This document shows, piece by piece, positions 6,715 through 56,254 of a DNA stretch of 64,000 bases. The position numbers were made by a program, and so were the translations under genes. Under the pieces are notes generated by a model. That model was not told the origin of the DNA, ran no database searches, and was given only the letters and a program-made list of their open reading frames with translations. How positions within the stretch are numbered: the stretch's first letter is position 1; every line of letters starts with the position of its first letter. The DNA is taken from sequence record OR050627.1. One strand, 5' to 3'.

Positions 6715-6722
6715 TATAAATA
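6715..6722 (+). promoter_or_regulatory. T4-type late promoter TATAAATA (capsid gene)
   Basis: Exact T4 gp55 late consensus 33 nt before the MCP ATG. Also exact at 43057 and 63214. Variants TATACATA at 2467, 26876, 32409 and 60121. Confidence 0.75.
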
Positions 6723-8552: not shown

Positions 8553-8609
8553 GTATAAATTTAACACAAAATATTTTCATATGTTAAATAAAATGATTAA
8601 ATTTACATA

Positions 8610-10067
8610 ATGATTAAACGTAAAAGACTTACATATAGCGACGTTATAGCCGACTGCAAAAAGACACACGATAATTACTATGAATATGTAGATACTTCTG
8701 CAACTTGGTATAAGAAAACTGACAAACTTAGAATTATATGTCCAGTTCACGGAGAATTTGAACAATCTGGTAAAAATCATAGTAATGGCCAAGGATGTAC
8801 TAAATGCAAAAAGAACATGCAGTCATACGACCAAATTATGTCAAAAGTTTTAGAAGTTCATGCTAAACGAGGATATGCTTACGAAGATACTTCTGCAGAA
8901 TATACTGTGTCTACATCGTCTATGCTTAAAGCTAACTGTCATAAACATGGCAAATTTGAAGTCGGCGCGCATGCGCATAGTGTTGGCGTACTAGGCTGTC
9001 AAGGTTGTTATACTGATGATTTAGTTGAACGTCAAAGATATAGTAAAGATGAAATGCGCAATATTTGTACAGATATTTTGGCTAAACGAAACTTATCCAT
9101 TATAGACATTACTTTTTATGTCGATAAAGCAAATTCTAATTTTATAATAAATTGCCCTAAACATGGTAACTTTGAAAAGAACGCATATCAGATACTATTA
9201 AAACAAGGCTGCCCTAATTGTGTAGGTTACAACTCATCTAAAGCCGAAATATTTTTAAGAGATCATTTAGTCAGTAACGGAATTTTAGATGCTGTAGGAC
9301 GTAAACGTTTTAGACATCATGAAACTAATAAACTTTATGAAATTGACTTACAATCACCAAGCTTAAAAATTGGCATAGAATTTAACGGAATACATTGGCA
9401 TAGAGGTGAAATTTTTAAGCATAAGCATATGTTAAAAACTACAAGTCTAGACTATATGAACTGGCAGCTAATCCATATTTTCGAGGACGAATATCATACG
9501 AAGTTTAACTCAGTAATGTCAATGATTAATCATAAACATGGAGTCACTAAACAAAAAATTCATGCCAGGAAAACTAAGACTGCCCTAATTGACGAAGATA
9601 CTTATACACAATTCTGTAATGAAAATAGCGCACAAATTTTTGACAAACTAGCATTTAATTACGTCGGACTATATTTGGCTGAAACATTAGTTAGCGTAAT
9701 TGCTTATAACGTAGATAGCAAAGCTAACGTAAACATCATAAACATTGCAATGCTAAACAATCATACGATAATTGGTGGAGTTGGCAAATTAGTAGCTTAC
9801 ATAGAACGTTCAGAACGTCCGGCATCAATAACTGCTACGCTAAACAGGCAATTCTCAACTAAGCATAACGTTTTTGAAAAGTTAGGATTTGATTTTGTTG
9901 AATATACTGAACAAAATTTTATGTACAGTATACATAGTAGTACTAGGATTTTGCCAGAACACACGCCCATCGAACATCAAATAGATTACAACAAAGTCTG
10001 GGATGTCGGTAACATTATTATGAAAAAAGTGTTCAAATTATTTTCATATGTCATTTATTTTTCTTAA
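8610..10067 (+). mobile_element. Free-standing homing endonuclease: Zn-ribbon repeats + PD-(D/E)xK (DUF559/Vsr-like) nuclease + C-terminal GNAT-like domain
   Basis: Three I-x-C-x-x-HG-x-F...G-C-x-x-C repeats; YEIDLQSPSLKIGIEFNGIHWH; KIHARK. Inserted immediately after the capsid gene with its own promoter at 8581-8605. Confidence 0.75.
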
Positions 10068-11793: not shown

Positions 11794-12528
11794 ATGCAAA
11801 ACAAACCAATCTTAACAAGAGACCAAAAGCTAGCAATCCTAGGAGATAACCCACATAACTGGGACGTAGACAACTTGGAAATTGTACAAGACATTGCAAT
11901 TACTAACGAATTTGTGCATCAGGCTAACGAAGCTAACTACAAAACTTTGCTAGGCTTAGGCTGGACAAACCACTACACAATTAACTTGCTAGACAAAATT
12001 AACATCAACTATTTTATTGCTACTCCGGAAGTTTCAGGAAAACCTTCAAGTGACTTCAAAATTTCAATGAGGAATCACTTTGACCAGGATGTTTCAGAAG
12101 ACTTAGGCACTACACCAAATGCAGAAGCTGGAACTGGCTTAGCTAACCTGTGGACTAGGCAAAACGCTTTAGTTGCACACTTATTTAGAGCGTCAAGCAT
12201 TATGAATACTATGTACGGTAACTTTGGCAAGACAATAATCGTAAACACGCATCTTGCTGCAGCTATAAAAAGTACAAATTTATTCAAGCCTACGCCAATT
12301 GAGGAATTGGTTGAAACTTCTACATCTACTATGCCGTACGTTGCAGGAACAATTACTACTGAAGATGGCAAAATGTCACTGAAAGTTGTTGTTAATCCTC
12401 AGCAACCTTGGGCAGACACTACGGCAATCCTGCATGATGGTGAATTTGACTTTCAGACAATTGACATGGAGGATGGCTTAACTTCAATTTCATTCGCATT
12501 TAACAATGACATTGGCCCATGGGCATAG
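11794..12528 (+). CDS. Truncated major-capsid-protein paralog (A-domain region only)
   Basis: ANLWTRQNAL / IIVNTHLAAAIKS / YVAGTI / NPQQPWADTTAIL / FNNDIGPWA align by eye to MCP ENLWTRQRRV / VVVNSQLMAAIKE / YYAGTI / DPNMKWNDTTAIL / FDNGFGRWA. Confidence 0.85.
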   Translation: MQNKPILTRDQKLAILGDNPHNWDVDNLEIVQDIAITNEFVHQANEANYKTLLGLGWTNHYTINLLDKININYFIATPEVSGKPSSDFKISMRNHFDQDVSEDLGTTPNAEAGTGLANLWTRQNALVAHLFRASSIMNTMYGNFGKTIIVNTHLAAAIKSTNLFKPTPIEELVETSTSTMPYVAGTITTEDGKMSLKVVVNPQQPWADTTAILHDGEFDFQTIDMEDGLTSISFAFNNDIGPWA

Positions 12529-17400: not shown

Positions 17401-17437
17401 AAAAATGCCCAGCTAATTATTTAGCTGGGCATTTTTT
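17401..17437. terminator. Bidirectional terminator between convergent genes
   Basis: aaaaatgcccagctaa/ttagctgggcattttt. Confidence 0.88.
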
Positions 17438-17663
17438 ATTTCTTAGCAGATTCAAGTTTTTCGAGCTGATCAGCTTTAAGCTTCTTGTCTCCTTTTAATT
17501 TCTCCATTATAGCTTTATAAGTGATTGTTCCACCTACAGCAACAGTCGTCATTAGCGCAGTAGCCAAGTATTCAATTTGTTCTGGACTTAATCCTGAAAT
17601 TACGTCAGAAATTGATTCGTTGGCAAAAGATTGTTTAGGTCCTTGTTTTCTAAATGTACTCAT
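17436..17663 (-). CDS. Small putative head protein; the only credible minus-strand gene
   Basis: MSTFRKQGPKQSFANE/SI then a hydrophobic helix. GATAAATA late-like box on the - strand at 17697-17704; bidirectional terminator 17401-17437. Confidence 0.65.
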   Translation of the reverse strand: MSTFRKQGPKQSFANESISDVISGLSPEQIEYLATALMTTVAVGGTITYKAIMEKLKGDKKLKADQLEKLESAKK

Positions 17664-18416: not shown

Positions 18417-19700
18417 ATGACAGCAAACGTACAAAACTTAGGAACTATTTTCGCAGATAAATTCAATGAAGTAATGGCTAACGAAGCTAACGTAACAAAA
18501 GCTTACCAGGTCATAGCTAAATTTTGTATAAGCCAAGCTAACCAGGCTGACGAAGATGACTCAGAAACTATAGCTTTCTGGAATGAAAAGGAAACATATT
18601 GCATGGACAAAGCTAAAGCCGGAGTTGCTAAAGTTGCAACTACTATCGAACGTTTCCAAAAGAACACTTCAAATTTCAAAACAGAATTTAAGTTTTCAAG
18701 CAAGGAGGAGCGAACAATTTACCAAAGATTCGTAGAGAACAAAGAAAACACTACTAACAAGTTAATGTACTACACAGTAACTGATGAAAATTTCAATTAC
18801 AGAACACAATCAGGCGTTTACTTCCATAACATGGTTAATGCAATCGTTGAGAGGTTCAATGAAATTTCAAACTACGAATTTGCAATCGTTGACAAGGAGT
18901 TCTTAGTAAACAACGAATTTGCAATTGACACTGAACTTGGTAGAAGATATGCGTATTATGTAGATACTGAGGACTTCCATGCATCTACAAAAGAACAAGT
19001 AGCATCAGTATATTCAAAAGTACATCCTGGATGTAGAGTATTCGTATCTTATGAAGCATTAGCCGAACATATCTCAACTTACATCAGATACAAAGCAATT
19101 TACATTCTTAGCGACCAGGCGTTTAATGCTTTACGTTACTTAGTAGATTCCATCGAAGTTGTTAAATGTCCAAACCTTGACTTAACAGAATTTGAAGAGG
19201 ACGGTTTAATTAGCCATGACTTCCAGGCATACGCAGAATTCTTAAGCTTCAGAAAATTCAACACTCAGCATTATACTAATTCGGAAACTGTGGAGGTAGA
19301 AGTTGAACAAAAACAGGAGTTCTTCTCTGACTTCATCAGATTCAAAACTACTGGAAAATCAGAGAAAAAGTCAGTAACAAAGGACATTACATATGATTTA
19401 ATTACAATTTCCAAACCGGCATCCAAGGTACCAGTATATAGATTTGCTAAAAGAATGAAGCAAAACCCAGGTACTAGACAAATCCTGATTCAGAATATCT
19501 TGCTAACATTGAACGAAAACTTACAATTGGAAAACATTGAAGTTATGCCAGAAGACTTTACGTTAAGCAACAACAAAGATTACGTAATGCATAGCCAACT
19601 TAACTCCATCATTACAATTGCTAACAGAGATGCTGATAGATTCCATGCAGGAACGTTAGAAGTGCTAACAAACATTTTGCAAATACAAATTAGAAAGTAA
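18417..19700 (+). CDS. Hypothetical early protein (427 aa)
   Basis: Long ORF with highly-expressed-type codons; promoter TATATTTG 18326-18333; hairpin terminator near 19760-19790. Confidence 0.75.
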   Translation: MTANVQNLGTIFADKFNEVMANEANVTKAYQVIAKFCISQANQADEDDSETIAFWNEKETYCMDKAKAGVAKVATTIERFQKNTSNFKTEFKFSSKEERTIYQRFVENKENTTNKLMYYTVTDENFNYRTQSGVYFHNMVNAIVERFNEISNYEFAIVDKEFLVNNEFAIDTELGRRYAYYVDTEDFHASTKEQVASVYSKVHPGCRVFVSYEALAEHISTYIRYKAIYILSDQAFNALRYLVDSIEVVKCPNLDLTEFEEDGLISHDFQAYAEFLSFRKFNTQHYTNSETVEVEVEQKQEFFSDFIRFKTTGKSEKKSVTKDITYDLITISKPASKVPVYRFAKRMKQNPGTRQILIQNILLTLNENLQLENIEVMPEDFTLSNNKDYVMHSQLNSIITIANRDADRFHAGTLEVLTNILQIQIRK

Positions 19701-24052: not shown

Positions 24053-26722
24053 ATGGCAAAATTTACAAAACTTGCTGGAGAAGTTGCTAAGCTTTACGAC
24101 GGTAAAGTTACTGGTAACACTATCAAATTTGACAGTGAGGACGACTTATTTAAAGCAGCTGATGAAATTGCTGATCAGTTTGCATTTACGATGGACCAGG
24201 ATAAACTGACCATTGAGTTCCTTAACGAAAACATCGACATTAAATTCCTTAAACAATTTGCATCTGCTATGGGCGTTAGCAAATTTACAAACGAATATGT
24301 CGGTAAACTTACTAAACAAATAGGTATTCAGCTTAATGAGACTGAAGTTGACACAGTTACTACATTACTAAACAAAGTAGAAAGTCCGGAATATCCTGAT
24401 GTTGCTAAAGTTGCAGCTGACCCAATGCAACAAATTGCAGATACAATTACAGCATCTACGTCAACAGGCGCTACATTAGACATTGTTGATGGCGAAAATT
24501 CTGCAAAGCAAATAGTTATTAGAACTGACGGCAAACTTATTGCAGCCACGCCTACTGACATCGTAGCAATCAATGAATCTGCTTACGTGCACTACGGAAT
24601 GCATCAACTTAATGAAAATGAGTACAACGCACTTAAAGCTTTGGCAGATGTTGAAGCTAAACGTAGATTCCTAACAAGCATGGGTATTCAAGACCTTGAC
24701 GCCGAATCAATTGCTAAGAACTTAGAGTTGCTTAAACCTCTACATCCTGACATGGATGCAAACGGACTACTTCCACTAAACGAAGCCAAAGTTGAAATTG
24801 AGGTTGGCGTTACTTACGCTAGCAAAGCTAATGATGCTTTGGAAGATGTTAAACATCTGTACAAAAAACTAAAGCAAAAAGCTTCAAACTCATGGGTTGT
24901 CAAAGACTATGACGTCAATGATATTGTAGAAACTTTAGAAAAAGCCGGAGTTCCTGCTAACGAAATTTACGTTAACGAGTCTACAAAAGACATGGACATA
25001 TACAACTTACAATCTAAAGTCGCGCTATTCTGTAAAAAGTCAGGACTTTCTGGAGCCGATGTACAAAAAGCTTTACTACTTGTTAACTTAGAAGCTAAAG
25101 AAGCTAAGCCTAATTTTAGCAAATACATTAACATCAAGGACAGTATGCTAAACGAATCTGCAGATGCTGAGGACGCTGAGGAAATGTTCGAACGTAAGAA
25201 CAAAGCTTACTCTAAGATGATTGAGCAAGATGGCTTAGCTAAAGAACTTTCAGAATTCCTTGCGTCTTTTGGCGAAAACACTAAAATTCCTAAGGATGGC
25301 TTAGTTGGTGAGTATGGCGAACTTTCTGCAGATTTGCAAGAAGGAATCAACAAATTCATGGAAGAGCGTGGTTATTTTGCTAATGAGTCTGACAGTACTA
25401 ACGAAGAAATTGAAAGTGTATACAAATTTGAGTCGATAAAAGATATTGAAGTTGCTGCAGCGGCTAAAGGATATGTTTGCAAAGGGCATTCAGGACAATC
25501 TGAGTCTTCTGACAAATACAAATTTGACATTCTAGCCAAAGGTGGCAAAAAATGTGCAATGGGTGTTTATGACAAAACTAAAAAGATTGCAATATTGGAT
25601 GTTAATGATGAACATAAAGGAACTTCATTACTTGAGGCTAAAATGATCAATGAGAGCGCAGGCATTGAAAACTTCTTTGCATCTATGGGCGCTACGTTCA
25701 GCAAAGAGTTACGTACAGATGGCACTTACAAATACCAAGTCACTGGCTTAGTAGGTTATGCTAATGAGGCTACTGAAGTGCCTAACACTGCCGATCTAAT
25801 TGCATTTGAGATTCTTAAACTATACGGAAACTTCAAAGAAGCTACAAGGCTTTCACGTTCAGTAGTTAAGCAAGCATTACGTAACGTTATTGACACGTTG
25901 AAAGTTGACGACTCTTGGTTAACTGACGAATCAAAGTTTATTTCGCTTTTTGAAGCTATCGACACTATGAGAGTAGACTTTGGCCTAATTGACGAATCAA
26001 TACCTCAGCAAGAAGCTAAAATTGCCGGAACTAAAGCTAAGATAGCAGAAATTAAATCAGAAGCTAAGGCTGCTTCAGCTAACGCATCTTCTAAAATTTC
26101 TACAGAAAAGGCTAAGCTTGCAAATGCTAAAGCTACTTTGAAAAACCTTAAAAAGTCAAAGTCGTTAAATGAATCTAAAGCACCTCAAGGTGTAGGCGGA
26201 AATGTTTACGTAGTACCAAACTCGTCTTTCCAAAATCCTTGGCTGACTCATAAACTTGAAACGTCACAAGGCATGAGAGGATATCAGTTTGCAAATCAAT
26301 TTAAGTCTAACATAGTTAACGCAGACATTATGGTTGACTATTATTTGCCTAAAGATGACAATGTTGTTAATGAAGTTGGTATGGATACGGAAGGAACTTC
26401 AAAACCGCAAAAATCTGAAATTATAGCTACGCCAGTTTCAATTTACATTAACGAAAACAACGTACTTTGTTTCAATGAAAATCCGATCCCTTCTGAAATT
26501 GCAGAAAACGGTCAAATTGGCTCAGTTGCACAATTCAAGGAATATGCTAAATACATTCTTGGAGGAGGCATTCCTGGTGCAGAATCTGCATGCGAAGAAG
26601 GCCCAGTAACTGAAGAGGATATTGCAAAAATTGACATTATTTGTGATGCATGCGGTGAAAACTATGGCGCTATGATGGGTAAATTTGATGATTATCTTAG
26701 TCAGAAAGCTTCCAATTGCTAA
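24053..26722 (+). CDS. Large acidic putative internal-head polyprotein
   Basis: 889 aa with 8 [ILVA]NE[SAG] motifs; late-like TATAAATC at 24019-24026. Confidence 0.65.
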   Translation: MAKFTKLAGEVAKLYDGKVTGNTIKFDSEDDLFKAADEIADQFAFTMDQDKLTIEFLNENIDIKFLKQFASAMGVSKFTNEYVGKLTKQIGIQLNETEVDTVTTLLNKVESPEYPDVAKVAADPMQQIADTITASTSTGATLDIVDGENSAKQIVIRTDGKLIAATPTDIVAINESAYVHYGMHQLNENEYNALKALADVEAKRRFLTSMGIQDLDAESIAKNLELLKPLHPDMDANGLLPLNEAKVEIEVGVTYASKANDALEDVKHLYKKLKQKASNSWVVKDYDVNDIVETLEKAGVPANEIYVNESTKDMDIYNLQSKVALFCKKSGLSGADVQKALLLVNLEAKEAKPNFSKYINIKDSMLNESADAEDAEEMFERKNKAYSKMIEQDGLAKELSEFLASFGENTKIPKDGLVGEYGELSADLQEGINKFMEERGYFANESDSTNEEIESVYKFESIKDIEVAAAAKGYVCKGHSGQSESSDKYKFDILAKGGKKCAMGVYDKTKKIAILDVNDEHKGTSLLEAKMINESAGIENFFASMGATFSKELRTDGTYKYQVTGLVGYANEATEVPNTADLIAFEILKLYGNFKEATRLSRSVVKQALRNVIDTLKVDDSWLTDESKFISLFEAIDTMRVDFGLIDESIPQQEAKIAGTKAKIAEIKSEAKAASANASSKISTEKAKLANAKATLKNLKKSKSLNESKAPQGVGGNVYVVPNSSFQNPWLTHKLETSQGMRGYQFANQFKSNIVNADIMVDYYLPKDDNVVNEVGMDTEGTSKPQKSEIIATPVSIYINENNVLCFNENPIPSEIAENGQIGSVAQFKEYAKYILGGGIPGAESACEEGPVTEEDIAKIDIICDACGENYGAMMGKFDDYLSQKASNC

Positions 26723-26902
26723 CAAAACGTTAAGCATAAATAACGTAACGACTACAAAAGCCTGAACTAACATAACGTTCAGGCTTTTAAAACGTTCTAC
26801 AACATTTTGCAAAAGCTTTACTTACGTTAAACCTTACTTACGTTAAGCTACATTTAGCAAAAGCCTAACAAAACGTATACATACTAAAACATAACAAATA
26901 CA

Positions 26903-28204
26903 ATGTCAAATTACATAAATGAAGCAATGTCACTTAATGGCAAAGTGGCATATAACGAAGGCCAAGTAGCTTTCAAAACTAACACTGCGTTCTCCATCAT
27001 ACAGCATTTAGCTTGGCAATACAACGACACTTACGTTGGTAGTGTTAAGACGATAAAAATGCCTTACGAAATTAAAGCCAAAGCAGTTAAGCAACTTTCA
27101 TTAAATGGAACTCCTTGCATTTTTAGAGAACTTGGTGAACTTGAAACATTCCAGTCTGTAGGTGAATTTGACTTCCTACAAATGGTTTATATGTTCACTG
27201 ACAAGCCTGAATTGCTACAATACATTGACCAGTCATACGTAGAATTTGGAATTTTCTTACAAAATGGCACATGGTGGTTTGTTGAAAAGCAGAACAACGC
27301 TAAGCTTTTTGAAGAAATTGACGAACTTAACGTTGGCTACTACAACCTAGATTTGCCAACAGCTAAGCTGCCAAAAACAATTTCTATGATTGATTCTGTT
27401 AGTCAAGGCAAAACTGCATTACGTACATATGCAAAAGACAATGCACTTACTGATTTTGTTATATCTACGTTTACTACGCCAATGGCAGTACAACTTAATG
27501 CGTATCCATCAATAGCTAAATTTGCATCATTTGCTCCAGATGCTAACGAATTTACTAACCAACTAATTTCTGTAGTTTTAAAAGAAGAAACGGAAGTTCC
27601 TTACTTACTTGACAAAACTTCCGAGCATATGGTATTGTTAATATGTGTAGATGGCGTAAACAAATGGTTCAAAATTTCAGCATCAGACGTTCTTGCTGCA
27701 ATTAGCAAAAATCAACAAAACTTTTTTGTAGATAGCGTTAAGAACTCACTAGAATCTAGCAGATTAAATGCTGGATTAAAATCAGATGACTTGTATGCAG
27801 CAATTAAACGTTTACGTGCGGTAGCATTATTCAACAATTTGCTACAAGATACTGGTTACTCTGGCTATTATTACGTTAAGAACAACTCACATACACTAAA
27901 GGCTGATGCTTTCAACAAATTCAGCATTAATTCTCAAGGTTATGTTAACCAGATTTTTAATGACAAGGACTTAGTGCTTTACAAGGACACTATAATTTCA
28001 TATAGCGTCGATCTTAAAGCAGGCATCGTAGTTATTGGCTATCCTGCGTTAAACCATACTTGCTATATAACGTCAATTGATCAGTTGCCAGAATTGCAAA
28101 ATGAATTCCTGGATGGCAATGCTAAACTGGACACAGTAGTTTCAATTTCCGACATCTACTTTAAGGACAACGGTTCCAAGAAAGGCGATGGCGGTAAAAA
28201 ATAA
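26903..28204 (+). CDS. Late protein of unknown function, with N-terminal YINE/A motif
   Basis: 433 aa; TATACATA at 26876-26883. Confidence 0.65.
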   Translation: MSNYINEAMSLNGKVAYNEGQVAFKTNTAFSIIQHLAWQYNDTYVGSVKTIKMPYEIKAKAVKQLSLNGTPCIFRELGELETFQSVGEFDFLQMVYMFTDKPELLQYIDQSYVEFGIFLQNGTWWFVEKQNNAKLFEEIDELNVGYYNLDLPTAKLPKTISMIDSVSQGKTALRTYAKDNALTDFVISTFTTPMAVQLNAYPSIAKFASFAPDANEFTNQLISVVLKEETEVPYLLDKTSEHMVLLICVDGVNKWFKISASDVLAAISKNQQNFFVDSVKNSLESSRLNAGLKSDDLYAAIKRLRAVALFNNLLQDTGYSGYYYVKNNSHTLKADAFNKFSINSQGYVNQIFNDKDLVLYKDTIISYSVDLKAGIVVIGYPALNHTCYITSIDQLPELQNEFLDGNAKLDTVVSISDIYFKDNGSKKGDGGKK

Positions 28205-28522: not shown

Positions 28523-29368
28523 ATGCTAAATACATTTACAAATATGACGTCCGCCAATAACAATGAATTCTTAAATGAATGTGTTATTGCTGCTAAGAAA
28601 TTCGATGGCCACTTTATTATTGCAAAAAATCGTGACCGTCCGTACGATCCATCATTAACGTTAATCCACGAAATTATTGACGGTATTGAAACTGTGTGGA
28701 TGGTTGATGAAGATACTGACTGGTCAGAAGGTATGAATGAATTTGGCATTAGCATAGTTAATTCGGCGCTTATGGTTGCTAGAGATGAGGCTGAAAAGAA
28801 AACTGCCAAGAAAGAAGGCAAAAAGTTTTTGAAGGACGGCACAATAATTCGTGAAGCGCTAAAGCATTCTGATGTTGAAAAGATCATTGACATTATCATA
28901 AGCAAAGACGGCGGGCTTAAAGGTCATACTTTCGTTTGTACAAAAGATGAACTTTATGCAGTTGAATTGACTTCTAAACATCAGCCAGAAGTTCAAAACA
29001 TTTCTGATTCTGACAATGAAGTTAGGACTAACCACGGAATCAAACATACTTCTGCAGGTTACCAAAAAGGCTTGTCATTCAAGTCATCTGCAATTCGTAA
29101 AAATTCTGCAATTGCTCAGATTAGTAAAGCTAATACGCCTGAGGAAGTTCTGCAAAGAATGCGTAAACGTCTTTATAAAAAGGATTCTATGCTTAATATG
29201 AAACGTGATACTAAAAAGCTTTGGACATCTTCGCAACTTATGATGGACCCGACAAATCTGACCATTAAGCTAGTAGCATTTTCTGACAAAACTCAGGATT
29301 TGAAAATTGACAACAGATTGCCAGAAGGTTATGTGCCTAAAATCAAACTTGAATTGCAAGTTATATAA
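28523..29368 (+). CDS. Ntn-hydrolase (peptidase C45 / choloylglycine hydrolase-like)
   Basis: C20-VIAAKKFDGHFIIAKNRD and EGMNEFGISIVNSAL are typical Cys-Ntn motifs; later VRTNH. The Cys is preceded by FLNE. Confidence 0.75.
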   Translation: MLNTFTNMTSANNNEFLNECVIAAKKFDGHFIIAKNRDRPYDPSLTLIHEIIDGIETVWMVDEDTDWSEGMNEFGISIVNSALMVARDEAEKKTAKKEGKKFLKDGTIIREALKHSDVEKIIDIIISKDGGLKGHTFVCTKDELYAVELTSKHQPEVQNISDSDNEVRTNHGIKHTSAGYQKGLSFKSSAIRKNSAIAQISKANTPEEVLQRMRKRLYKKDSMLNMKRDTKKLWTSSQLMMDPTNLTIKLVAFSDKTQDLKIDNRLPEGYVPKIKLELQVI

Positions 29369-29448: not shown

Positions 29449-30489
29449 ATGAACTTTAACAAAAATGAGGCCTACGGAATTGGAGGCGAAAAATTAACTT
29501 ATAAGGGCCAGACTTCTACAGCCAATAAAGTATACCATGCATTCGTTAACGAATCAGGAAGTAATGTTTTCTTAACTGCTGAGCAGATTAACGAAGCCAC
29601 AAACGGTTCTGCCGACGAAGAAGTTTACAATCAATGGGCCGAACTTTTACTTCAGCATATTGGCGTTACAAGAGCTAAAAAGTATCTTAATGCTAACGAC
29701 ATCAACAAAGAACTTAAAGCTATGCTTGATGCTAATCATGACATGGAGTCTGACATTCTTTACGATAAAGCAATGAACGCTAAGCTTATTGCTGCAGTAA
29801 GCAGACGTAGAAAGGCTGCAGGCTATGTTAATGAAAACGAATCTAGCGGCTTCATTAATTTCATTAACGAGCATTTTGAGCGTAGACGTTTTGGTTCGCC
29901 AAACTTTGAAGTTACTGACAGATTAGATAGTCAGCTTGATGGCGATGAAGTTATGGCAATTGCAGAAAAATATTGGAAAGGAGTTTCAAAATCTATCAGC
30001 TATCAGAACAACGTAGCATATGATGCTCAGAAAAAATTGGCAAAATATTTTAACGATAACAGGGCATCTATTGACAAAGCAGATTTTGATGTTTTTGCAT
30101 CTGAATATATTGCTGCATCTAAACGTAAATTAGATAATAAGCCTGCGTATACGCCGCCACCTGCAAACAGAATGGAGACTTATGCAGATTTCATTACTAA
30201 AAACTTCCCAGTTTTCAAAGGATTTAGGTTTCCGGAAGTCAAGGGCGACAAGCAATTCGAAGACACTCTTTATGTAAAAGTTAAGCCTGCAGATTATGGC
30301 GCATTAGCACCGCTATTTAAAGATATTACTGCATACATTTACATTCAAATAAATTCAAATGGTTCTGGTGATGTATCTTATGGACTTAAAGGTACTACAG
30401 TTCAAACTGGCAAAGAAAAACAGATTTACAAAGCTGGTTGGAATACTAAAGATGGAGGCAAAACCTTCAAAACTTTAGGTTGGGACTAA
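29449..30489 (+). CDS. Putative multi-domain internal head protein
   Basis: FVNE/S, QINE/A, YVNENE/S and FINE/H motifs; the C-terminal domain is paralogous to the next ORF. Confidence 0.6.
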   Translation: MNFNKNEAYGIGGEKLTYKGQTSTANKVYHAFVNESGSNVFLTAEQINEATNGSADEEVYNQWAELLLQHIGVTRAKKYLNANDINKELKAMLDANHDMESDILYDKAMNAKLIAAVSRRRKAAGYVNENESSGFINFINEHFERRRFGSPNFEVTDRLDSQLDGDEVMAIAEKYWKGVSKSISYQNNVAYDAQKKLAKYFNDNRASIDKADFDVFASEYIAASKRKLDNKPAYTPPPANRMETYADFITKNFPVFKGFRFPEVKGDKQFEDTLYVKVKPADYGALAPLFKDITAYIYIQINSNGSGDVSYGLKGTTVQTGKEKQIYKAGWNTKDGGKTFKTLGWD

Positions 30490-30508: not shown

Positions 30509-30850
30509 ATGAAAGGATTTTTTATTAACGAAGCTACTGAAAGCTTCGATTCTAAAGATACGGTAGCATTTATTAACAAAACATTCCCAGGAATTTCAAC
30601 AAAATTCTTGCCGGCTAACTTCATGACTAAAATGAAGTACGAAAACAGTAACATTATTGCTGACAAGGAAATGTGAATTTTCTCAGCAGTATTAGCTGAT
30701 TGTATCAGCAAACTGACTGTTAGAACTTTTGGAGTTAATGAAGTTGAGATATTATTTGACTTAAGCTATGAACTTAAAAACCGTAAAAGCAATGGAATGT
30801 CAGTTTCTTACACATCTAGCGATGGCGGTAAGAACTTCAAAATTCAATAA
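30509..30850 (+). pseudogene. Paralog of the upstream C-terminal domain, interrupted by one in-frame TGA (30674-30676); pseudogene, read-through or sequencing error
   Basis: MKGFFINE/ATESF...DKEM*IFSAVLAD...SYTSSDGGKNFKIQ*, compared with upstream ...DYGALAPLFKD...GWNTKDGGKTFK. CATAAATA late-like box at 30490-30497. Not in the ORF track. Confidence 0.7.
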
Positions 30851-49655: not shown

Positions 49656-49705
49656 AAAATAGTTGCAATTTTGTTTTTATATGTCATAAAAATTGATTAA
49701 TTTTA
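49656..49705 (+). promoter_or_regulatory. Promoter variant with TAATTTTA; overlaps a 16-bp-arm inverted repeat at 49638-49671
   Basis: Same spacings as the family; same variant at 50660-50709. Confidence 0.7.
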
Positions 49706-50210: not shown

Positions 50211-50666
50211 ATGGAAGCTACAAACAACATAGCGTTCGACTACAATTACGTAAGTACGTTACTAACGCCATACTATGATAAGCCAGGCAAACTAACTATG
50301 CCAGCATCAGATACTACAGGACTGCAACTTGGAATAAACCAAGGAGGTCACACTAAATTTTTTGTACATGATAACAAAATTTCATTTATTCATAACGGAA
50401 CAAATTACGCTGCGGTACAGGATTTTGAGTATATGCTAAACAAAACTACGCAGAATTTGTTGAAAATATCTTGTCTAGACTATAACAAATTGGACCCTGA
50501 AAAATTTAAGGGCATACATAGTGGCTACAATGCTTTGCGTGATGGATTGCTTGAATATTTTAGCATACAACTATGTGCAATTTATTTTGACGACATTAAG
50601 TCAATGGAGGTTAGCCAAGAAGGCTTTGTAGTTAATGATGTTCAATTTAAACTTTCTAAAAAATAG
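50211..50666 (+). CDS. Hypothetical protein
   Basis: 151 aa. Confidence 0.6.
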   Translation: MEATNNIAFDYNYVSTLLTPYYDKPGKLTMPASDTTGLQLGINQGGHTKFFVHDNKISFIHNGTNYAAVQDFEYMLNKTTQNLLKISCLDYNKLDPEKFKGIHSGYNALRDGLLEYFSIQLCAIYFDDIKSMEVSQEGFVVNDVQFKLSKK

Positions 50667-50761
50667 TTGCCAAAATATTTTCATATGTCGTTTATTTTGA
50701 TTAATTTTACTATAACAAAATAACAATATACACAAAGTGTAATTGCTAAAGCATAAAAATT

Positions 50762-51010
50762 ATGATTAACGAAGAACTTACAACAGATCACTTTAAAGGA
50801 CTTCCAAAATTTGGAACTTGTAAAGTAGGAATGCGAATTGAATGTTTAGATACATTTGGTGACCCAATAAAGGAAATTTCAGGAGTTATACTTGAACTTT
50901 CAGAAGACAAAAAAGAAGCTTTAATTCAGTCAAGCTATGGCTTTGGAAAGCTACGTACATCTAAAATGCTGTACAACAGAATCAAACAAATTAACCAACA
51001 AGAATATTAG
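50762..51010 (+). CDS. Hypothetical early protein (SH3/KOW-like)
   Basis: KVGMRIEC...GVILE pattern; promoter 50660-50709. Confidence 0.55.
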   Translation: MINEELTTDHFKGLPKFGTCKVGMRIECLDTFGDPIKEISGVILELSEDKKEALIQSSYGFGKLRTSKMLYNRIKQINQQEY

Positions 51011-51014
51011 TATT

Positions 51015-52130
51015 ATGTTTATCTACCCGCTACACGAAGACCCTAAGCAGTCAGTTAAATATTTAACCGACTTCCATATAAAGAAACACGTTAAGTCAGT
51101 AACTAAGCTTTTGTTAGCGCACTTAGTAGCTAACGAAAGTGAAATTTACGATGAGGTTCCTGCACATTTGAAATTTTTTAAGTTTGAAAAGGAAATTAAC
51201 AAAACTGAGGAATGGCTTAACGAAAGCATGGCTAACGTACATTGGTTGCTAATTTATGGCACAGCAATGTTCGATGAGTACAAATTTAGATTTGGCAAAG
51301 ACTATAAATACTTGAAAATTTGGTCTGAATTAATGTCGTTAGTTTATGGTGCTGCAATGAAGCATTACAAAGACTTGATATACGAAGACCATACGTCATT
51401 CCTGCTAACAATTCCGGATATGTATGTCGTTTACGAAGAACCTGTTGATTGTTACAGATACTTCTATGTTCATGCAAGACTTTCTGGTGATAAAAGCGTT
51501 AAGTGGACAAAAGGTACTCCGCCAGACTTCCTAGATCAAACAAAATACACTCAGGAAATCGACTCTTTTGAAGGAGGTACTAAATTGGCTAAGATGGTTG
51601 CTAAATACAAAGATTCTGCAGTATCTGCCGAGGAAAAGGACATGATTCTAGGCTTTATACAAAAAGAAGCTGACAAGTTAAGAATGCCAGTAGAACGACT
51701 AATTTATGATAAATTTGAAAAACGTAAATGGCATTTTTTCAGATGGTATACACAATTAGACAGTCAGCTGCTGACAAAATTAGCACTGCATTTATTTGGC
51801 GATATTCCTCAATACTATGGTTCACATAACAAAAAAGTTAAGGAATGGAAGTTCAAATTGACTGACATTGAAGCCATTAAACTTCGCGAATACTACGACT
51901 TCCATAGAGCTAAACTTTGGCAAGAATTCAAAAAGGTAGAGGATTCTATGGCTACTGCATATGCCGCAGCACAAGGCTTGGATATTAGTGAAAATGTAGA
52001 CATTGATTACGCTAACGATGACGACGATTACAAATCTAAGTCTACATCATTTTATGATCATGCTACTGCAGCCGGATTAACTATGGGTATGGAAAAACAT
52101 ACGTATACTAAAACTTTAGGTAACAAGTAA
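51015..52130 (+). CDS. Pyrimidine-dimer-glycosylase-like domain fused to a DUF2786-like domain
   Basis: The N-terminal half parallels 53646..54140 (MFIYPLHEDP...DFHIKKH vs MNIFVLDEHP...NKHVVKM; DCYRYFY vs NSYRAYY). C-terminal KLAKMV...SAEEKDMI resembles DUF2786. Confidence 0.55.
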   Translation: MFIYPLHEDPKQSVKYLTDFHIKKHVKSVTKLLLAHLVANESEIYDEVPAHLKFFKFEKEINKTEEWLNESMANVHWLLIYGTAMFDEYKFRFGKDYKYLKIWSELMSLVYGAAMKHYKDLIYEDHTSFLLTIPDMYVVYEEPVDCYRYFYVHARLSGDKSVKWTKGTPPDFLDQTKYTQEIDSFEGGTKLAKMVAKYKDSAVSAEEKDMILGFIQKEADKLRMPVERLIYDKFEKRKWHFFRWYTQLDSQLLTKLALHLFGDIPQYYGSHNKKVKEWKFKLTDIEAIKLREYYDFHRAKLWQEFKKVEDSMATAYAAAQGLDISENVDIDYANDDDDYKSKSTSFYDHATAAGLTMGMEKHTYTKTLGNK

Positions 52131-52212
52131 AACTAACACCATTTTAAATGGTGTATGTAAAAACACGTACAAATTGCTAGCAATTTGTGTAAATAAACAA
52201 ATTACAACAACA

Positions 52213-52512
52213 ATGAAAACATTTTTCAACTTCGTTAACGAATCTATAACAAATTATCCTAAAGTAGCGTCTACTGCAGATTTAGTTGCTGCATTACCAG
52301 GATTAGTTGCAGAAAAATCAAAAGTTCAAGAGGGCAAACTATATAACACTTTATTAGCCAAAAACAATGGCAGCGTAATTATAGAATTGCAAACTTCCAA
52401 TGGCGCTGTTAAGGATGCTACTACTGAGGTTCTTGAATTTTATGCAAAAGTAAAATCATTCAAGTCGTATGAATATGACAGTAAAATGGGCATATTTATT
52501 GTACAATTCTAA
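52213..52512 (+). CDS. Small putative internal head protein with capsid-targeting N-terminus (MKTFFNFVNE/S)
   Basis: ATG 52213; late-like TGTAAATA at 52188-52195. Confidence 0.6.
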   Translation: MKTFFNFVNESITNYPKVASTADLVAALPGLVAEKSKVQEGKLYNTLLAKNNGSVIIELQTSNGAVKDATTEVLEFYAKVKSFKSYEYDSKMGIFIVQF

Positions 52513-52535
52513 CAACTTAAAAATCTAAAAATAAA

Positions 52536-52913
52536 ATGACATTTACCGAAATTTTCAGCGAAGAGATTATTGCGGAATTCAGAGCAGAATTGGCTAAAAT
52601 TAAAAAATCACAAAGCGTTAATATGTTCACCGAACCAGTTATTGATGCATACGAGGACATTCTGGAATGCATTGAAAATGGGTCAATAAATGATATTGAC
52701 GAATTGGAGGACTACATAGACATTCATTACGGAAGTACTGAGGAGGACGACAATGAATATTTTATAATTTGCTCACTTACGCAATATGCTGATGGCGACT
52801 TCGACGATGTTCACCAAATTTTCAAACAGGCCACATTATCCAAAAAGAAAATTAACCTTGAGGAGTTGTTAGCTGAAGAAGGTGATACGTTCGCATATGA
52901 AGACGAATTCTAG
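52536..52913 (+). CDS. Highly acidic protein (DNA-mimic candidate)
   Basis: 34 D/E versus 8 K/R in 125 aa (hand count). Confidence 0.5.
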   Translation: MTFTEIFSEEIIAEFRAELAKIKKSQSVNMFTEPVIDAYEDILECIENGSINDIDELEDYIDIHYGSTEEDDNEYFIICSLTQYADGDFDDVHQIFKQATLSKKKINLEELLAEEGDTFAYEDEF

Positions 52914-52932
52914 GTAGCATAAAACCAAACAC

Positions 52933-53187
52933 ATGGCAGAGTTAAATACAAACGACACAATAATACTTTATGACATTTATGATTATAACGTAGTACCAAT
53001 TGAAGTAGTCATGCAGATAAACGAAAATTATACTGCATGCATAAACCGATCAACAGATACACCAATAAAAATTTACAACAAACGTTTACTTGAGCTTTAC
53101 ACTAGCAAACGTGATGCGCTGGAAGCTTTACGTGAGCTTTTGTTGGCAAAGCTACAAGAAACTTTAGGACATATAAACGAACTTTAG
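52933..53187 (+). CDS. Hypothetical protein
   Basis: 84 aa. Confidence 0.55.
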   Translation: MAELNTNDTIILYDIYDYNVVPIEVVMQINENYTACINRSTDTPIKIYNKRLLELYTSKRDALEALRELLLAKLQETLGHINEL

Positions 53188-53195
53188 AACAAACA

Positions 53196-53474
53196 ATGAA
53201 GATTTTAAAATTTTACGCTGATTGGTGCGGACCATGTAAAGCGTTAAGCAACGCACTAGCTGGAATTGAAGGCGACTTAGCAGAAAGAAATGTAAAGCTA
53301 GAAAACATAAATGCTGATGACAAGGATGAACTTGCAGCAGATTTTGGCGTACGAGGATTGCCTACAACTTTAATCATTGCAGAAGATGGTGAAACTGTAC
53401 TTTTCAGAAAGCCTGGAATGTATAGCAAAGAGGACCTTTTGGCAATTATAGATGAACTGCAAAAACCAAAATAA
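53196..53474 (+). CDS. trxA: Thioredoxin
   Basis: FYADWCGPCK; FGVRGLPT. Confidence 0.95.
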   Translation: MKILKFYADWCGPCKALSNALAGIEGDLAERNVKLENINADDKDELAADFGVRGLPTTLIIAEDGETVLFRKPGMYSKEDLLAIIDELQKPK

Positions 53475-53645
53475 CTTAACATACTATGAAAAGAGACGTT
53501 ATCGTAATTGGTAGTGAAACTACTGAAGGATTTGCCAATGAATACTATTGGGGAATCTAAAATTTTTTAAAAATAAATTCCCAAATGTTTTCACGTTTGG
53601 GAATTTTTGTTTATATTTGTAATAACAAATTAAACAATAAAAGCT

Positions 53646-54140
53646 ATGAATATTTTTGTATTAGATGAACATCCAGTTAAAGCTGCACAAATGCAATGTA
53701 ATAAGCATGTAGTAAAAATGATAGTAGAAACTGCACAAATGCTTTCTACATATGCAAGAAAACATGAATTGCCTGGTAGTGATATGCTTTACAAAGCGAC
53801 ACATAAAAATCATCCATGTACATTATGGCTAGATGAATCTGTTAATAACGTACATTGGTTAGCTTTGCACGGCTTAGCATTAATTAAAGAATATTATCGT
53901 AGATATGGCAAACGACATAAAACTACTGATGTAATGTTGAATTTTTATAGCGTAGCATATAAAGAATTAATGCATGCAGATTTTAGCAAGCATACTAAAT
54001 TTGCATTAGCTATGCCAGAGGAATACATTACTGATGATGCAATAAATAGCTATAGAGCATATTATGCTAACGCCAAGAAAGATTTGTTGATTTACACTAA
54101 CAGAGAAATGCCTGAATGGATATCTTACTTTACTAAATAA
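53646..54140 (+). CDS. Pyrimidine dimer DNA glycosylase / endonuclease V superfamily protein
   Basis: MNIFVLD...KHVVKMIVETAQMLST, YKATHKNHPCTLW, AMPEEY...YRAYY. Confidence 0.8.
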   Translation: MNIFVLDEHPVKAAQMQCNKHVVKMIVETAQMLSTYARKHELPGSDMLYKATHKNHPCTLWLDESVNNVHWLALHGLALIKEYYRRYGKRHKTTDVMLNFYSVAYKELMHADFSKHTKFALAMPEEYITDDAINSYRAYYANAKKDLLIYTNREMPEWISYFTK

Positions 54141-54205
54141 AGTTGCATTAAAATTTTTACATGCCATAAATGTTTATGAAAAATTTAATAAATTTTTAAC
54201 ATTTT

Positions 54206-54240
54206 AAATTTTACTACGTAGTAAAATTTTAATATATTTG
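54206..54240 (+). promoter_or_regulatory. Topoisomerase promoter with a perfect 24-bp palindrome in the spacer
   Basis: AAATTTTACTACGTAGTAAAATTT at 54206-54229; TATATTTG at 54233-54240. Confidence 0.7.
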
Positions 54241-54274
54241 TATTATAAAATTAATCAAACAATAAAATTACATA

Positions 54275-56254
54275 ATGTCAGACGAACAAAATTACCAAGA
54301 AGTACACCAAAATGCGGATATCGAAAATAAGTACAAGAAACTTACAGATATTGAGCATGTACTTATTAGGCCTACAATTTACATAGGTTCAGTTATAGCA
54401 GAAAAATTTGTAACTGAAAAATACGTAACATTTCCAGATTCTGATGAAAAACCAAAAATCGTAACAGCAGAACTTACTTATAGTAAAGGCATCATTACGT
54501 TATTCAATGAGTTAGTCAATAACTCTTACGATGAGTACATCAGAACATTGAAAATGCGTCCAGCCGAAAGACTTACAGAATTACGTGTTACTATCAAAAG
54601 AAAGTCAGGAATTCTGGAAGTTGGCGATAACGGCGGTATTCCAGTAGTTTTGCATAAGGGTGAAAATATGCTATTGCCTACAATGTTATTTGGTCACTTA
54701 CGTTCAGGTTCAAACTACGACGATAGTAGAGGAGATGTTTCTGGAACTAATGGTGTCGGAGCATCTTTGGTTAACGTAATGTCTAAGTCATTCAAAGTAG
54801 AAACTTGCGATGGCAAAAACGTTTACGAAGGTAAGTGGTCAAACAATATGCAAACGTTCGAAGGCGATAATGTAACTAAAGCTAAACGTGACAACTCAAA
54901 AGGCACAACAATTTCTGCAGAATTAGATTTTGCCAGATTAGGAATGGAAGGCTTTACGCAGGATTTGGTTGACAAATTTAGAACCAGAACTTTAGAAGTT
55001 GCAGCTATGGCGGCATCCAAAGATAAGCCTATGAAAGTTATTTTCACTGTACTTAATGAAGAATCAAACTTAGCTGATTCAAGTGAAGAATTTTTGTTCC
55101 ATAGTTTCCAGGATTATGCAAGACTTTACGAAGGCGTTGACGAAAACTTCAATGGATTTACTTTGGAAAAAATGGACTTCTTAGTAGGACCTTCCACTTC
55201 CGATAGTTTAGAATCTTCGGCTTTATTGAACTCAATCAGATGTGACTATGGTACGCATATTGATACTTTGGCTGACAGAATAGTAGGACATATAAGATGG
55301 TTCATTAACAAAAAGCATAAAATTGATTTGAAGCCAAAACAAATCAAGGATAGACTTAGGTTTATTTCAAAATGGTCAGTACCTCAACCATCGTTTAACA
55401 ACCAAACTAAGGATGCTTTAGTAACTCCACCAAAAGACTTTGGATATGATGTTACTGAATTACCTTTGAAATTCTGCGGATGGCTTGACAAATCTGAAAT
55501 CGTTGCCAGACTTTTAGACTTCCACAAAAACAAACAACAAGAGGAGGAAAACGCTGCAGTACGTAGAGCAACAAAAGTCAAAGTTAATCACCAAAAGATC
55601 GACAAATTACTAGATGCTTCATCGCGTAACCAACGTAACAAATGTGAAATATTCTTGGCCGAAGGGGACTCTGCTATGAATGGTGTTCGTAGATGTAGGA
55701 ATGCAGAATATCAAGGTGCCTTTGGACTTGGTGGTAAATTCTCAAATGTTTTCTATGCCAAACCTGCCGATATTATCAAAGTTAGAGGTAAGGAAACTGC
55801 GTCTAAAGCTAAAAACTTAATGGACGCTACAGGTTTACAATTTGGAGTTAATGCTTTGGAAACTCTACGTTGGAACAGAATTAACATTATGACTGACGCT
55901 GACTACGATGGATACGCTATCGCATGCCAATTAGTTTTGTTCTTTAGAAAGTTCTGGCCTGAGTTGATTGAAGCTGGTAAGATAGCCAGAGTACTTTCGC
56001 CAATCATGGTTGCTAGAAAAGACAAAGATGTTAAAGTTTACTACACAATGGAAGACTATCAAAAAGATGAGGCTTGGTTAAACAAAAACAAATACCAATC
56101 AAAGCATATCAAAGGACTTGCAGCATTAAGACCTGAGGAATATGCAGATGTTATCAAAAATCCAGTGTTACAAAAAATCACTGAGGATTCAGAAGACTGG
56201 GCATCATTAGAACAATGGTTCGGAGATAATGCCGATGCAAGAAAAGTATTTTAA
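54275..56254 (+). CDS. Type IIA DNA topoisomerase large subunit (GHKL + TOPRIM; T4 gp39+gp60 equivalent in one ORF)
   Basis: EHVLIRPTIYIGS, ELVNNSYDE, GTNGVGASL, IFLAEGDSA, IMTDADYDG, IKGLAAL. Confidence 0.95.
   Translation: MSDEQNYQEVHQNADIENKYKKLTDIEHVLIRPTIYIGSVIAEKFVTEKYVTFPDSDEKPKIVTAELTYSKGIITLFNELVNNSYDEYIRTLKMRPAERLTELRVTIKRKSGILEVGDNGGIPVVLHKGENMLLPTMLFGHLRSGSNYDDSRGDVSGTNGVGASLVNVMSKSFKVETCDGKNVYEGKWSNNMQTFEGDNVTKAKRDNSKGTTISAELDFARLGMEGFTQDLVDKFRTRTLEVAAMAASKDKPMKVIFTVLNEESNLADSSEEFLFHSFQDYARLYEGVDENFNGFTLEKMDFLVGPSTSDSLESSALLNSIRCDYGTHIDTLADRIVGHIRWFINKKHKIDLKPKQIKDRLRFISKWSVPQPSFNNQTKDALVTPPKDFGYDVTELPLKFCGWLDKSEIVARLLDFHKNKQQEEENAAVRRATKVKVNHQKIDKLLDASSRNQRNKCEIFLAEGDSAMNGVRRCRNAEYQGAFGLGGKFSNVFYAKPADIIKVRGKETASKAKNLMDATGLQFGVNALETLRWNRINIMTDADYDGYAIACQLVLFFRKFWPELIEAGKIARVLSPIMVARKDKDVKVYYTMEDYQKDEAWLNKNKYQSKHIKGLAALRPEEYADVIKNPVLQKITEDSEDWASLEQWFGDNADARKVF

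Follow-up and report, generated by a model that had tools for sequence, protein, structure and literature searches.

A putative T4-type capsid-targeting propeptide on ORF207 and other proteins of Chryseobacterium jumbo phage MA9V-1

The internal proteins of bacteriophage T4 carry a capsid targeting sequence, which is reportedly the subject of a study by Mullaney and Black from 1996. In the T4 record, IPII and IPIII begin with M-K-T-Y-Q-E-F-I-A-E↓A and IPI with M-K-T-F-K-E-F-T-S; in the notation used here, the arrow marks the predicted cut and the Glu just before it is P1. Through the targeting sequence, which gp21 removes, the internal proteins and Alt are loaded onto the scaffolding core; IPI* is injected and inhibits a restriction enzyme, and the T-even internal proteins are highly diverse, with the targeting sequence alone being conserved (PMC3012670, PMC5694885). 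In the phiKZ-like giants SPN3US, 201phi2-1 and phiKZ, many internal and ejection proteins are likewise processed by a gp21-related protease with a cut after Glu, and their propeptides are thought to target them into the prohead (PMC5694885, PMC10052503). These propeptides are mostly longer than 100 residues and have no short shared tag (PMC5694885). Here, we describe ORF207 (MA9V1_207; positions 52213 to 52512, + strand), which encodes a protein of 99 residues with the N-terminus M-K-T-F-F-N-F-V-N-E↓S. It lies in a window of 64,000 nucleotides, which corresponds to positions 124001-188000 of the 213.5-kb record OR050627.1 of Chryseobacterium phage MA9V-1, a jumbo phage and myovirus with C. indologenes MA9 as isolation host. 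We put the probability at about 0.7 that a capsid-targeting propeptide of the T4 type is present on ORF207 and on some dozen further proteins of MA9V-1.

The likeness to the T4 system comprises genes for a T4-type portal, protease and coat protein, leaders of about 10 residues that follow M-K-T-[F/Y]-x-x-F-[I/V]-x-E↓[A/S] on small proteins that are unrelated outside the leader, a predicted cut after Glu with a hydrophobic P3, and a gene set that varies between close relatives. The leader of ORF150 shares 7 of 11 residues with that of IPIII, and IPI matches 8 of the first 9 residues in the leader of a homologue of ORF182 (P0014; M-K-T-F-K-E-L-T-S…). There are also differences. P2 is almost always Asn in MA9V-1 whereas it is variable in T4, the leader genes are spread over some 150 kb, the protease continues into an extension of about 1,170 residues with many sites whereas T4 has the separate scaffold protein gp22, the host belongs to the Bacteroidota, and the mature parts lack similarity to IPI*. 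Processing in the phiKZ-like phages is backed by mass spectrometry, and the MA9V-1 system is predicted from sequence.

A leader shared by ORF207 and other proteins

The leader of ORF207 comprises 10 residues, and the predicted cut before Ser11 would leave a mature part of 89 residues (9.7 kDa, near-neutral with an isoelectric point of 7.9). The protein has this one N-terminal site and no internal site. Its orthologue in the close relative MA9V-2 is 88% identical and keeps the leader as M-K-T-F-F-T-F-V-N-E↓S.

For genome-wide scans and comparisons, the whole records of MA9V-1 and MA9V-2 were used. In thirteen MA9V-1 proteins, the Glu of a hydrophobic-N-E-[A/S/G] site falls within the first 25 residues, while 2.6 are expected from the density of internal sites (Poisson p = 4e-6); 300 residue shuffles gave a mean of 1.8 N-terminal sites and a maximum of 7. 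The original prediction had named five N-termini, those of the genes starting at 52213, 2205, 30509, 26903 and, on the minus strand, 17663, and all five were found. Further bearers are the coat protein ORF152, ORF172 and ORF182 inside the window and six more proteins outside it. A stricter leader, M-[K/R/Q]-x-F-(1-4 residues)-[I/V]-N-E↓[A/S], is present on eight of the 13 bearers, namely ORF207, ORF150 and ORF184 in the window, and ORF113, ORF119, ORF126, ORF146 and a ParB-like gene split over the ends of the record outside it. In pairwise all-against-all BLASTP comparisons of the 13 bearers, similarity was confined to residues 1-11, with 57-73% identity, and the mature parts were unrelated. 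The codons of the leaders vary synonymously, with Ser as TCT, TCC or AGC and Arg as CGC or AGA (in each case both codon families), and Ile as ATT, ATC or ATA, which argues for a module that is selected as a peptide.

The bearers had been described as scattered small genes. Scattered they are, but not every bearer is small or a plausible effector: ORF180 has 433 residues (48 kDa) and is conserved in relatives, ORF152 is the coat protein, and ORF150 occupies the position of gp67/gp68. The view that they are analogues of the T4 internal proteins finds support in silico from the T4-type head genes, the likeness to the IPI, IPII and IPIII leaders, the occurrence of the motif in the protease extension and the coat protein propeptide, the unrelated mature parts, the signs of selection at the peptide level, and a gene content that varies between close relatives.

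The mature part of ORF207 is an orphan. A tblastn search against phages found it in MA9V-1 and MA9V-2 only, a word-based search of 5.8 billion proteins found MA9V-2 only, and the ESM Atlas gave nothing usable. There was no Pfam and no PHROG match, and nothing below E = 1.4 among the PDB sequences. A HMMER scan of 1.84 billion representatives returned three weak matches (E = 8.5e-7 to 6.6e-5), which were rejected as spurious: P0003 and P0004 are immunoglobulin-like tandem-repeat proteins with scores summed over several stretches, and P0005 (2525 residues, 8 stretches) was rejected on the pattern of these two alone. The top rows of a Foldseek search, H-NOX and gyrase, were disregarded, as their TM-scores were below 0.5. 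No likeness to IPI* in sequence or fold emerged from the homologue, PDB-sequence and fold searches.

The predicted protease site in the head genes and in relatives

The start of the window holds a head module of the T4 type. ORF149 (423 to 2135, + strand) encodes a gp20-type portal (Pfam Portal_T4, E = 1e-54; phrog_213). It is followed by ORF150 (2205 to 2453, + strand; 82 residues), which begins M-K-T-F-T-C-F-I-N-E↓A and ends with F-V-N-E at its C-terminus; the MA9V-2 orthologue is 93% identical, and the leader is kept. ORF150 is placed between the portal and protease genes, exactly as gp67 (80 residues) and gp68 are in T4. Read side by side, ORF150 and gp67/gp68 show no sequence similarity, and the internal protein-type leader of ORF150 is absent from gp67/gp68.

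ORF151 (2501 to 6544, + strand; 1347 residues) consists of a gp21-type prohead serine protease domain (residues 1 to about 179; phrog_207, E = 9e-25) and a long extension. As a single sequence, the protease domain had no match in the PDB, whereas a profile of four such domains (MA9V-1, pT24, PAU and PTm1) matches the structure of T4 gp21 (5JBL) with E = 1.7e-7. His81 and Ser136, which we take to be the catalytic pair, are invariant in all four domains and lie within conserved E-H-P and S-x-R-G blocks. The extension of about 1,170 residues holds 21 copies of hydrophobic-N-E-[ASG]. In ORF151, Asn occupies x in 21 of the 28 hydrophobic-x-E-[ASG] motifs, and 21 of the 27 N-E dipeptides fall in the motif, with [F/Y/M]-[I/A/L]-N-E↓S-A as the consensus of the sites. 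The first site follows residue 179, and a cut there would release the protease domain. In MA9V-2, the orthologue has 17 sites and is shorter by 140 residues. Overall, ORF151 has the appearance of a polyprotein, in which 21 predicted cuts would give fragments of 9-179 residues. One predicted fragment of 137 residues encloses a DUF5856 domain (residues 473-572; Pfam, 46.8 bits); a matching PHROG carries the name of a starvation-inducible regulator.

The gp23-type major capsid protein ORF152 (6794 to 8476, + strand; Pfam Gp23, E = 1e-12) has two propeptide sites, F-I-N-E↓A at residue 11 and F-L-N-E↓S at about residue 51. In the alignment, their counterparts in pT24 are I-T-E↓S and I-L-E↓S, those in PAU L-N-E↓S and L-M-E↓N, and those in PTm1 I-T-E↓S and I-N-E↓S; the site in T4 gp23 is F-L-T-E↓A at residue 65. 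ORF179 (24053 to 26722, + strand; 889 residues) has 8 internal hydrophobic-N-E-[AS] sites, and its syntenic homologues in relatives have 7-10, which makes it a candidate for a processed internal or scaffold-like protein. In total, ORF151 and ORF179 hold 29 copies of the motif [F/Y/M]-[I/A/L]-N-E↓[S/A], and the coat protein propeptide has two more; P4 is F, Y or M in 16 of the 29 sites, the same as in the leaders. Because the same motif is found in the ORF151 extension, in ORF179 and in the coat protein propeptide, the leaders are predicted to end in a protease site. This ending is almost certainly the prohead-protease site of MA9V-1, and the site, judged from these sequences, almost certainly a narrower form of the T4 rule with Asn at P2.

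Leaders are kept in MA9V-2 on all genes that it shares with MA9V-1. ORF113 and ORF126 are present in MA9V-1 only, and three other leader genes in MA9V-2 only, one of which encodes a beta-solenoid protein. Together with the re-housing of the ORF184 domain (see below), this makes the set of putative cargo genes variable between close relatives. PAU, which belongs to the same jumbo-phage clade as MA9V-1 (coat proteins 33% identical), has a leader pattern of its own, M-K-T-L-T-Q-L-Y-E↓A, often followed by K-L-N-E↓A, with 17 matches on the forward strand and none in reverse or control scans. Two of its bearers, gp142 and gp154 (NC_019521), are annotated as 'internal capsid protein', the PAU scaffold carries the leader, and scaffold and coat protein carry the motif. 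Apart from its leader, PAU differs from MA9V-1 in that its leader genes are grouped around the head module whereas those of MA9V-1 are more scattered, and the mature proteins are not homologous. Relatives were also sought in IMG/VR. A scan with a single coat protein sequence found none, whereas a coat protein alignment found 63 loci, the open reading frames of which were clustered by their N-termini without bias. The clusters include a family in locus L028 with M-K-H-I-K-L-F-E-E-F-I-x-E and, on a 425-kb contig (L073), 11 genes with N-termini ending F-I-N-E; further examples come from L080, a 145-kb ENA contig.

ORF182, the remaining bearers and the putative promoter boxes

ORF182 (28523 to 29368, + strand) encodes a predicted Cys N-terminal nucleophile (Ntn) hydrolase with a putative propeptide of about 19 residues that ends in F-L-N-E directly before the nucleophile Cys20. 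The start is probably the ATG at 28523 rather than the annotated one at 28544, as this fits the leaders of relatives. The match to Pfam AAT is weak. The AlphaFold2 model has a predicted local distance difference test score (pLDDT) of 88.1, with the first strand at residues 21-27, right after Cys20, and Foldseek matched it to isopenicillin N acyltransferase (2X1C/2X1D; E = 3e-8), bile salt hydrolases, penicillin V acylase and NAAA, with a probability of 1.00 for each. The model thus has the alpha-beta-beta-alpha arrangement of the Ntn fold, in which the nucleophile Cys would come to lie at the N-terminus of the first strand after removal of the propeptide. Within the family, both the Cys and an N-R-D-R motif are invariant. 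The homologues with the Cys, 115 in number, have propeptides of 4-91 residues; Glu precedes the Cys in 104 of them, I, L or V is found at P3 in 103, and in 10 the Cys comes directly after the initiator Met. Many of the homologues are on contigs of jumbo-phage size.

The known Cys Ntn hydrolases listed above share the fold and, as predicted for ORF182, expose the nucleophile by propeptide removal. A difference is that 104 of the 115 homologues in the ORF182 family have a propeptide ending in the phage protease motif [I/L/V]-x-E, which suggests that the enzyme is activated by the prohead protease and not by self-cleavage. In the simplest reading, the T4-type cut would create the nucleophile, so that the enzyme would become active only inside the maturing head. 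ORF182 is probably a zymogen that is switched on by the prohead protease.

ORF180 (26903 to 28204, + strand) has a short leader of 7 residues, M-S-N-Y-I-N-E↓A. In 8 homologues (41-55% identity), I-N-E is invariant while the residues upstream vary, and one homologue has an extension of 134 residues before I-N-E. ORF169 (17436 to 17663, - strand; 75 residues; orthologue in MA9V-2 97% identical) has a leader of 16 residues, M-S-T-F-R-K-Q-G-P-K-Q-S-F-A-N-E↓S. ORF172 (18417 to 19700, + strand; 427 residues), which is conserved in MA9V-2, is a weaker candidate with a possible propeptide of 23 residues ending M-A-N-E↓A.

A rearrangement connects ORF183 and ORF184. ORF183 (29449 to 30489, + strand; 346 residues) has the sites F-V-N-E↓S (residue 35) and I-N-E↓A (residue 49) and a junction Y-V-N-E at about residue 127. 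ORF184 (30509 to 30850, + strand) begins M-K-G-F-F-I-N-E↓A and has 55 residues up to an in-frame TGA, beyond which 57 more codons are conserved with MA9V-2. MA9V-2 has GGA at this position; the TGA may have arisen by a recent nonsense mutation or be an error of sequencing. In MA9V-2, the mature domain of ORF184 is fused behind the N-terminal part of ORF183 at the internal Y-V-N-E↓S junction, while in MA9V-1 an insertion of about 690 bp provides the domain with its own box and its own leader. Cleavage at the predicted sites would give a nearly identical product in both phages.

Outside the window, ORF119 (126 residues; genome 99933-100313 region) begins M-Q-T-F-L-Q-T-I-N-E↓S and has a weak similarity to acetyltransferases (phrog_3810, 6e-4); it is a candidate for an enzyme that is packaged. 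At its two ends, the linear MA9V-1 record overlaps by about 126 bp, and this splits the 154-residue ParB-like gene beside the terminase gene. Its parts are at L003:1-196 (minus strand) and in L006 near 25112-25507; the first 65 codons, which include the leader M-R-T-F-T-Q-I-I-N-E↓S, are unannotated. In MA9V-2 the gene is intact (MA9V2_054).

A T4-like box, TATA[A/C]ATA, is located 24-47 nucleotides upstream of the sheath, protease, coat protein, ORF147, ORF180, ORF182 and ORF187 genes. It was scored with explicit patterns, since refinement with a position weight matrix drifted to A-rich matches of low information and was dropped. With at most one mismatch, the box precedes 9 of 13 leader genes compared to 60 of 238 other genes (Fisher p = 0.0016), and a perfect box precedes 4 of 13 compared to 10 of 238. 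The coat protein gene (TATAAATA at 6715) and ORF180 (TATACATA at 26876) have perfect boxes. According to the original prediction, most of its five genes have a late-like box of their own even when embedded in early regions. This holds only in part: the box of ORF180 is perfect, those of ORF207, ORF169 (GATAAATA, 41 nucleotides upstream) and ORF184 (CATAAATA) have one mismatch each, and ORF150 lacks a box. ORF172 has no late box. The box of ORF207 follows just after a hairpin at 52136-52154, and the MA9V-2 orthologue has AATAAATA at the same distance. ORF207 does lie in a stretch whose genes have putative early-type promoters, at 49676, 50680 and 57159.

These promoters belong to a motif, T-T-C-A-T-A-T-G-T-C, of which the genome has 32 copies on the + strand and 15 on the - strand with at most one mismatch. 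It is often accompanied by T-A-T-A-T-T-T-G downstream, sits upstream of non-structural genes, and probably represents an early promoter class with a Bacteroidota-type -7 element. In the window it occurs at 8576, 10043, 13625, 29388, 45469, 49676, 50680 and 57159.

In the neighbourhood of the coat protein gene, two further genes were noted. ORF153 (8610-10067, + strand), directly 3' of it, has weak matches of the homing-endonuclease type (DUF723, MTES_1575 REase); in PTm1, too, a Hef-like homing endonuclease follows the coat protein gene. ORF157 (11794 to 12528, + strand; 244 residues) has an A-N-E↓A site at about residue 46. Residues 312-514 of the coat protein align with its MA9V-2 orthologue at 29% identity (second tblastn match, E = 1e-18), and ORF157 is weakly indicated as a possible truncated coat protein paralogue, a gp24-like or vertex protein. 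Short contigs from a wastewater metatranscriptome (2024) and from a run labelled as a tick metagenome (2022) match positions 50500-56000 of the window with 99-100% identity; these matches, kept as contigs only, indicate presence and are silent on expression or timing.

Role of the leader and alternative explanations

In the mechanism that we propose, the leader M-[K/R/Q]-x-F-(1-4 residues)-[I/V]-N-E would dock a new protein onto the assembling prohead core, which is probably built from the long extension of ORF151 and from ORF179, and the coat protein shell would close round this core. The gp21-type protease domain of ORF151 would then cut after the Glu in [F/Y/M]-[I/A/L]-N-E↓[S/A/G/C], and thereby free itself, chop the core polyproteins, trim the coat protein and remove the leaders. 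The mature proteins, among them the 89 residues of ORF207, would remain with the packaged DNA inside the head and probably follow it into the host cell. As judged from their sequences, the leader proteins are probably loaded into the capsid as in T4, while retention in the head and injection are plausible by analogy.

Alternatively, the leaders could be propeptides of core or structural proteins that are chopped and expelled at maturation, like T4 gp22, gp67 and gp68, so that they would serve assembly and not delivery. ORF150, with the size of gp67 and at the exact position of gp67/gp68, would fit such a role, as would the polyprotein-like ORF151 and ORF179 with their many cuts and the leader on the coat protein itself. 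However, ORF207, ORF113, ORF126 and ORF119 have a single N-terminal site and none internally, and a folded mature domain would survive the cut; the acetyltransferase-like ORF119, a small protein, and the Ntn hydrolase-like ORF182 would be enzymes and not scaffold; and an accessory, variable gene content is unusual for essential assembly proteins. We consider this explanation unlikely as an account of the leaders in general. A nucleotide-level origin of the shared N-terminus, be it the context of translation starts in an AT-rich genome or a recombination hot spot, with N-E-[A/S] as a coincidence, appears very improbable. Many genes do begin M-K with A-rich second codons, and the junction of the ORF183/ORF184 rearrangement falls at the motif. 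Such an origin is nevertheless disfavoured because the leader codons differ synonymously between genes, including two unrelated Ser codon families, and it is also at odds with the 29 tetrapeptides inside ORF151 and ORF179 far from any start, with the statistics of N-terminal enrichment, and with the motif kept before the catalytic Cys in more than 100 homologues. Hardly credible is a localisation signal for a site other than the capsid, such as for membrane insertion or export. The leader has a short hydrophobic stretch rich in aromatic residues, F-F-x-F, but 7-10 residues with an acidic end do not suffice for a signal peptide or a transmembrane helix, a lipobox Cys is lacking, and the motif also marks the coat protein and the protease, which both act in the cytoplasm.

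Several points speak against a T4-type capsid-targeting propeptide, or limit how far it accounts for the bearers. Virion mass spectrometry, N-terminal sequencing and transcript timing are absent from both published MA9V papers, and the virion proteins are documented by an SDS polyacrylamide gel (SDS-PAGE) on which 15 or more bands are seen but not assigned. The strict leader pattern was drawn up after the data were seen, and the ORF151 protease domain scores 25.9 bits against Pfam S77, just under the cut-off of 27. The box of ORF207 (TGTAAATA, 52188 to 52195, + strand, 25 nucleotides upstream of the ATG) is one mismatch away from TATAAATA, no box precedes ORF150 or ORF146, and the promoter of ORF113 is of the early type. 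The AlphaFold2 model of ORF207 is of low confidence (pLDDT 54.6), and with this model Foldseek found no match in the PDB at E ≤ 0.001. Some bearers may be core proteins that are degraded and not retained as cargo, and ORF182, as an Ntn hydrolase, could process itself.

The original prediction had also seen prime candidates for injected anti-defence factors in these proteins. For ORF207, such an injected role is speculation because the protein is an orphan with a low-confidence fold, and an anti-defence or host-takeover role of its mature part, suggested by analogy, is a guess that we regard as rather unlikely.

Taken together, a capsid-targeting propeptide in MA9V-1 would take a known mechanism into a distant group of phages without changing current concepts. 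A wider reading is possible, and we offer it tentatively: M-K-T-F…hydrophobic-x-E↓ might be an ancient address code for cargo, from T4 to Bacteroidota-type jumbo phages and megaphages, in which the prohead protease also frees small proteins from polyproteins (the ORF151 extension, ORF179 and ORF183) and activates packaged zymogens such as the Ntn hydrolase, while recombination at the cleavage motif lets cargo move between having a leader of its own and being part of a polyprotein. If the capsid-targeting propeptide is confirmed, it would provide a list of probable virion-delivered proteins in a group in which nearly every gene is 'hypothetical', and the T4 cargo tag would reach the phages of Bacteroidota, which by coat protein similarity are kin of PAU, Tenacibaculum phages and Lak-like megaphages. 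ORF182, with its catalytic Cys right after the cut site, would be a directly testable case of enzyme activation by capsid maturation, and the 10-residue tag might be used to load foreign proteins into such capsids, as has been done in T4.

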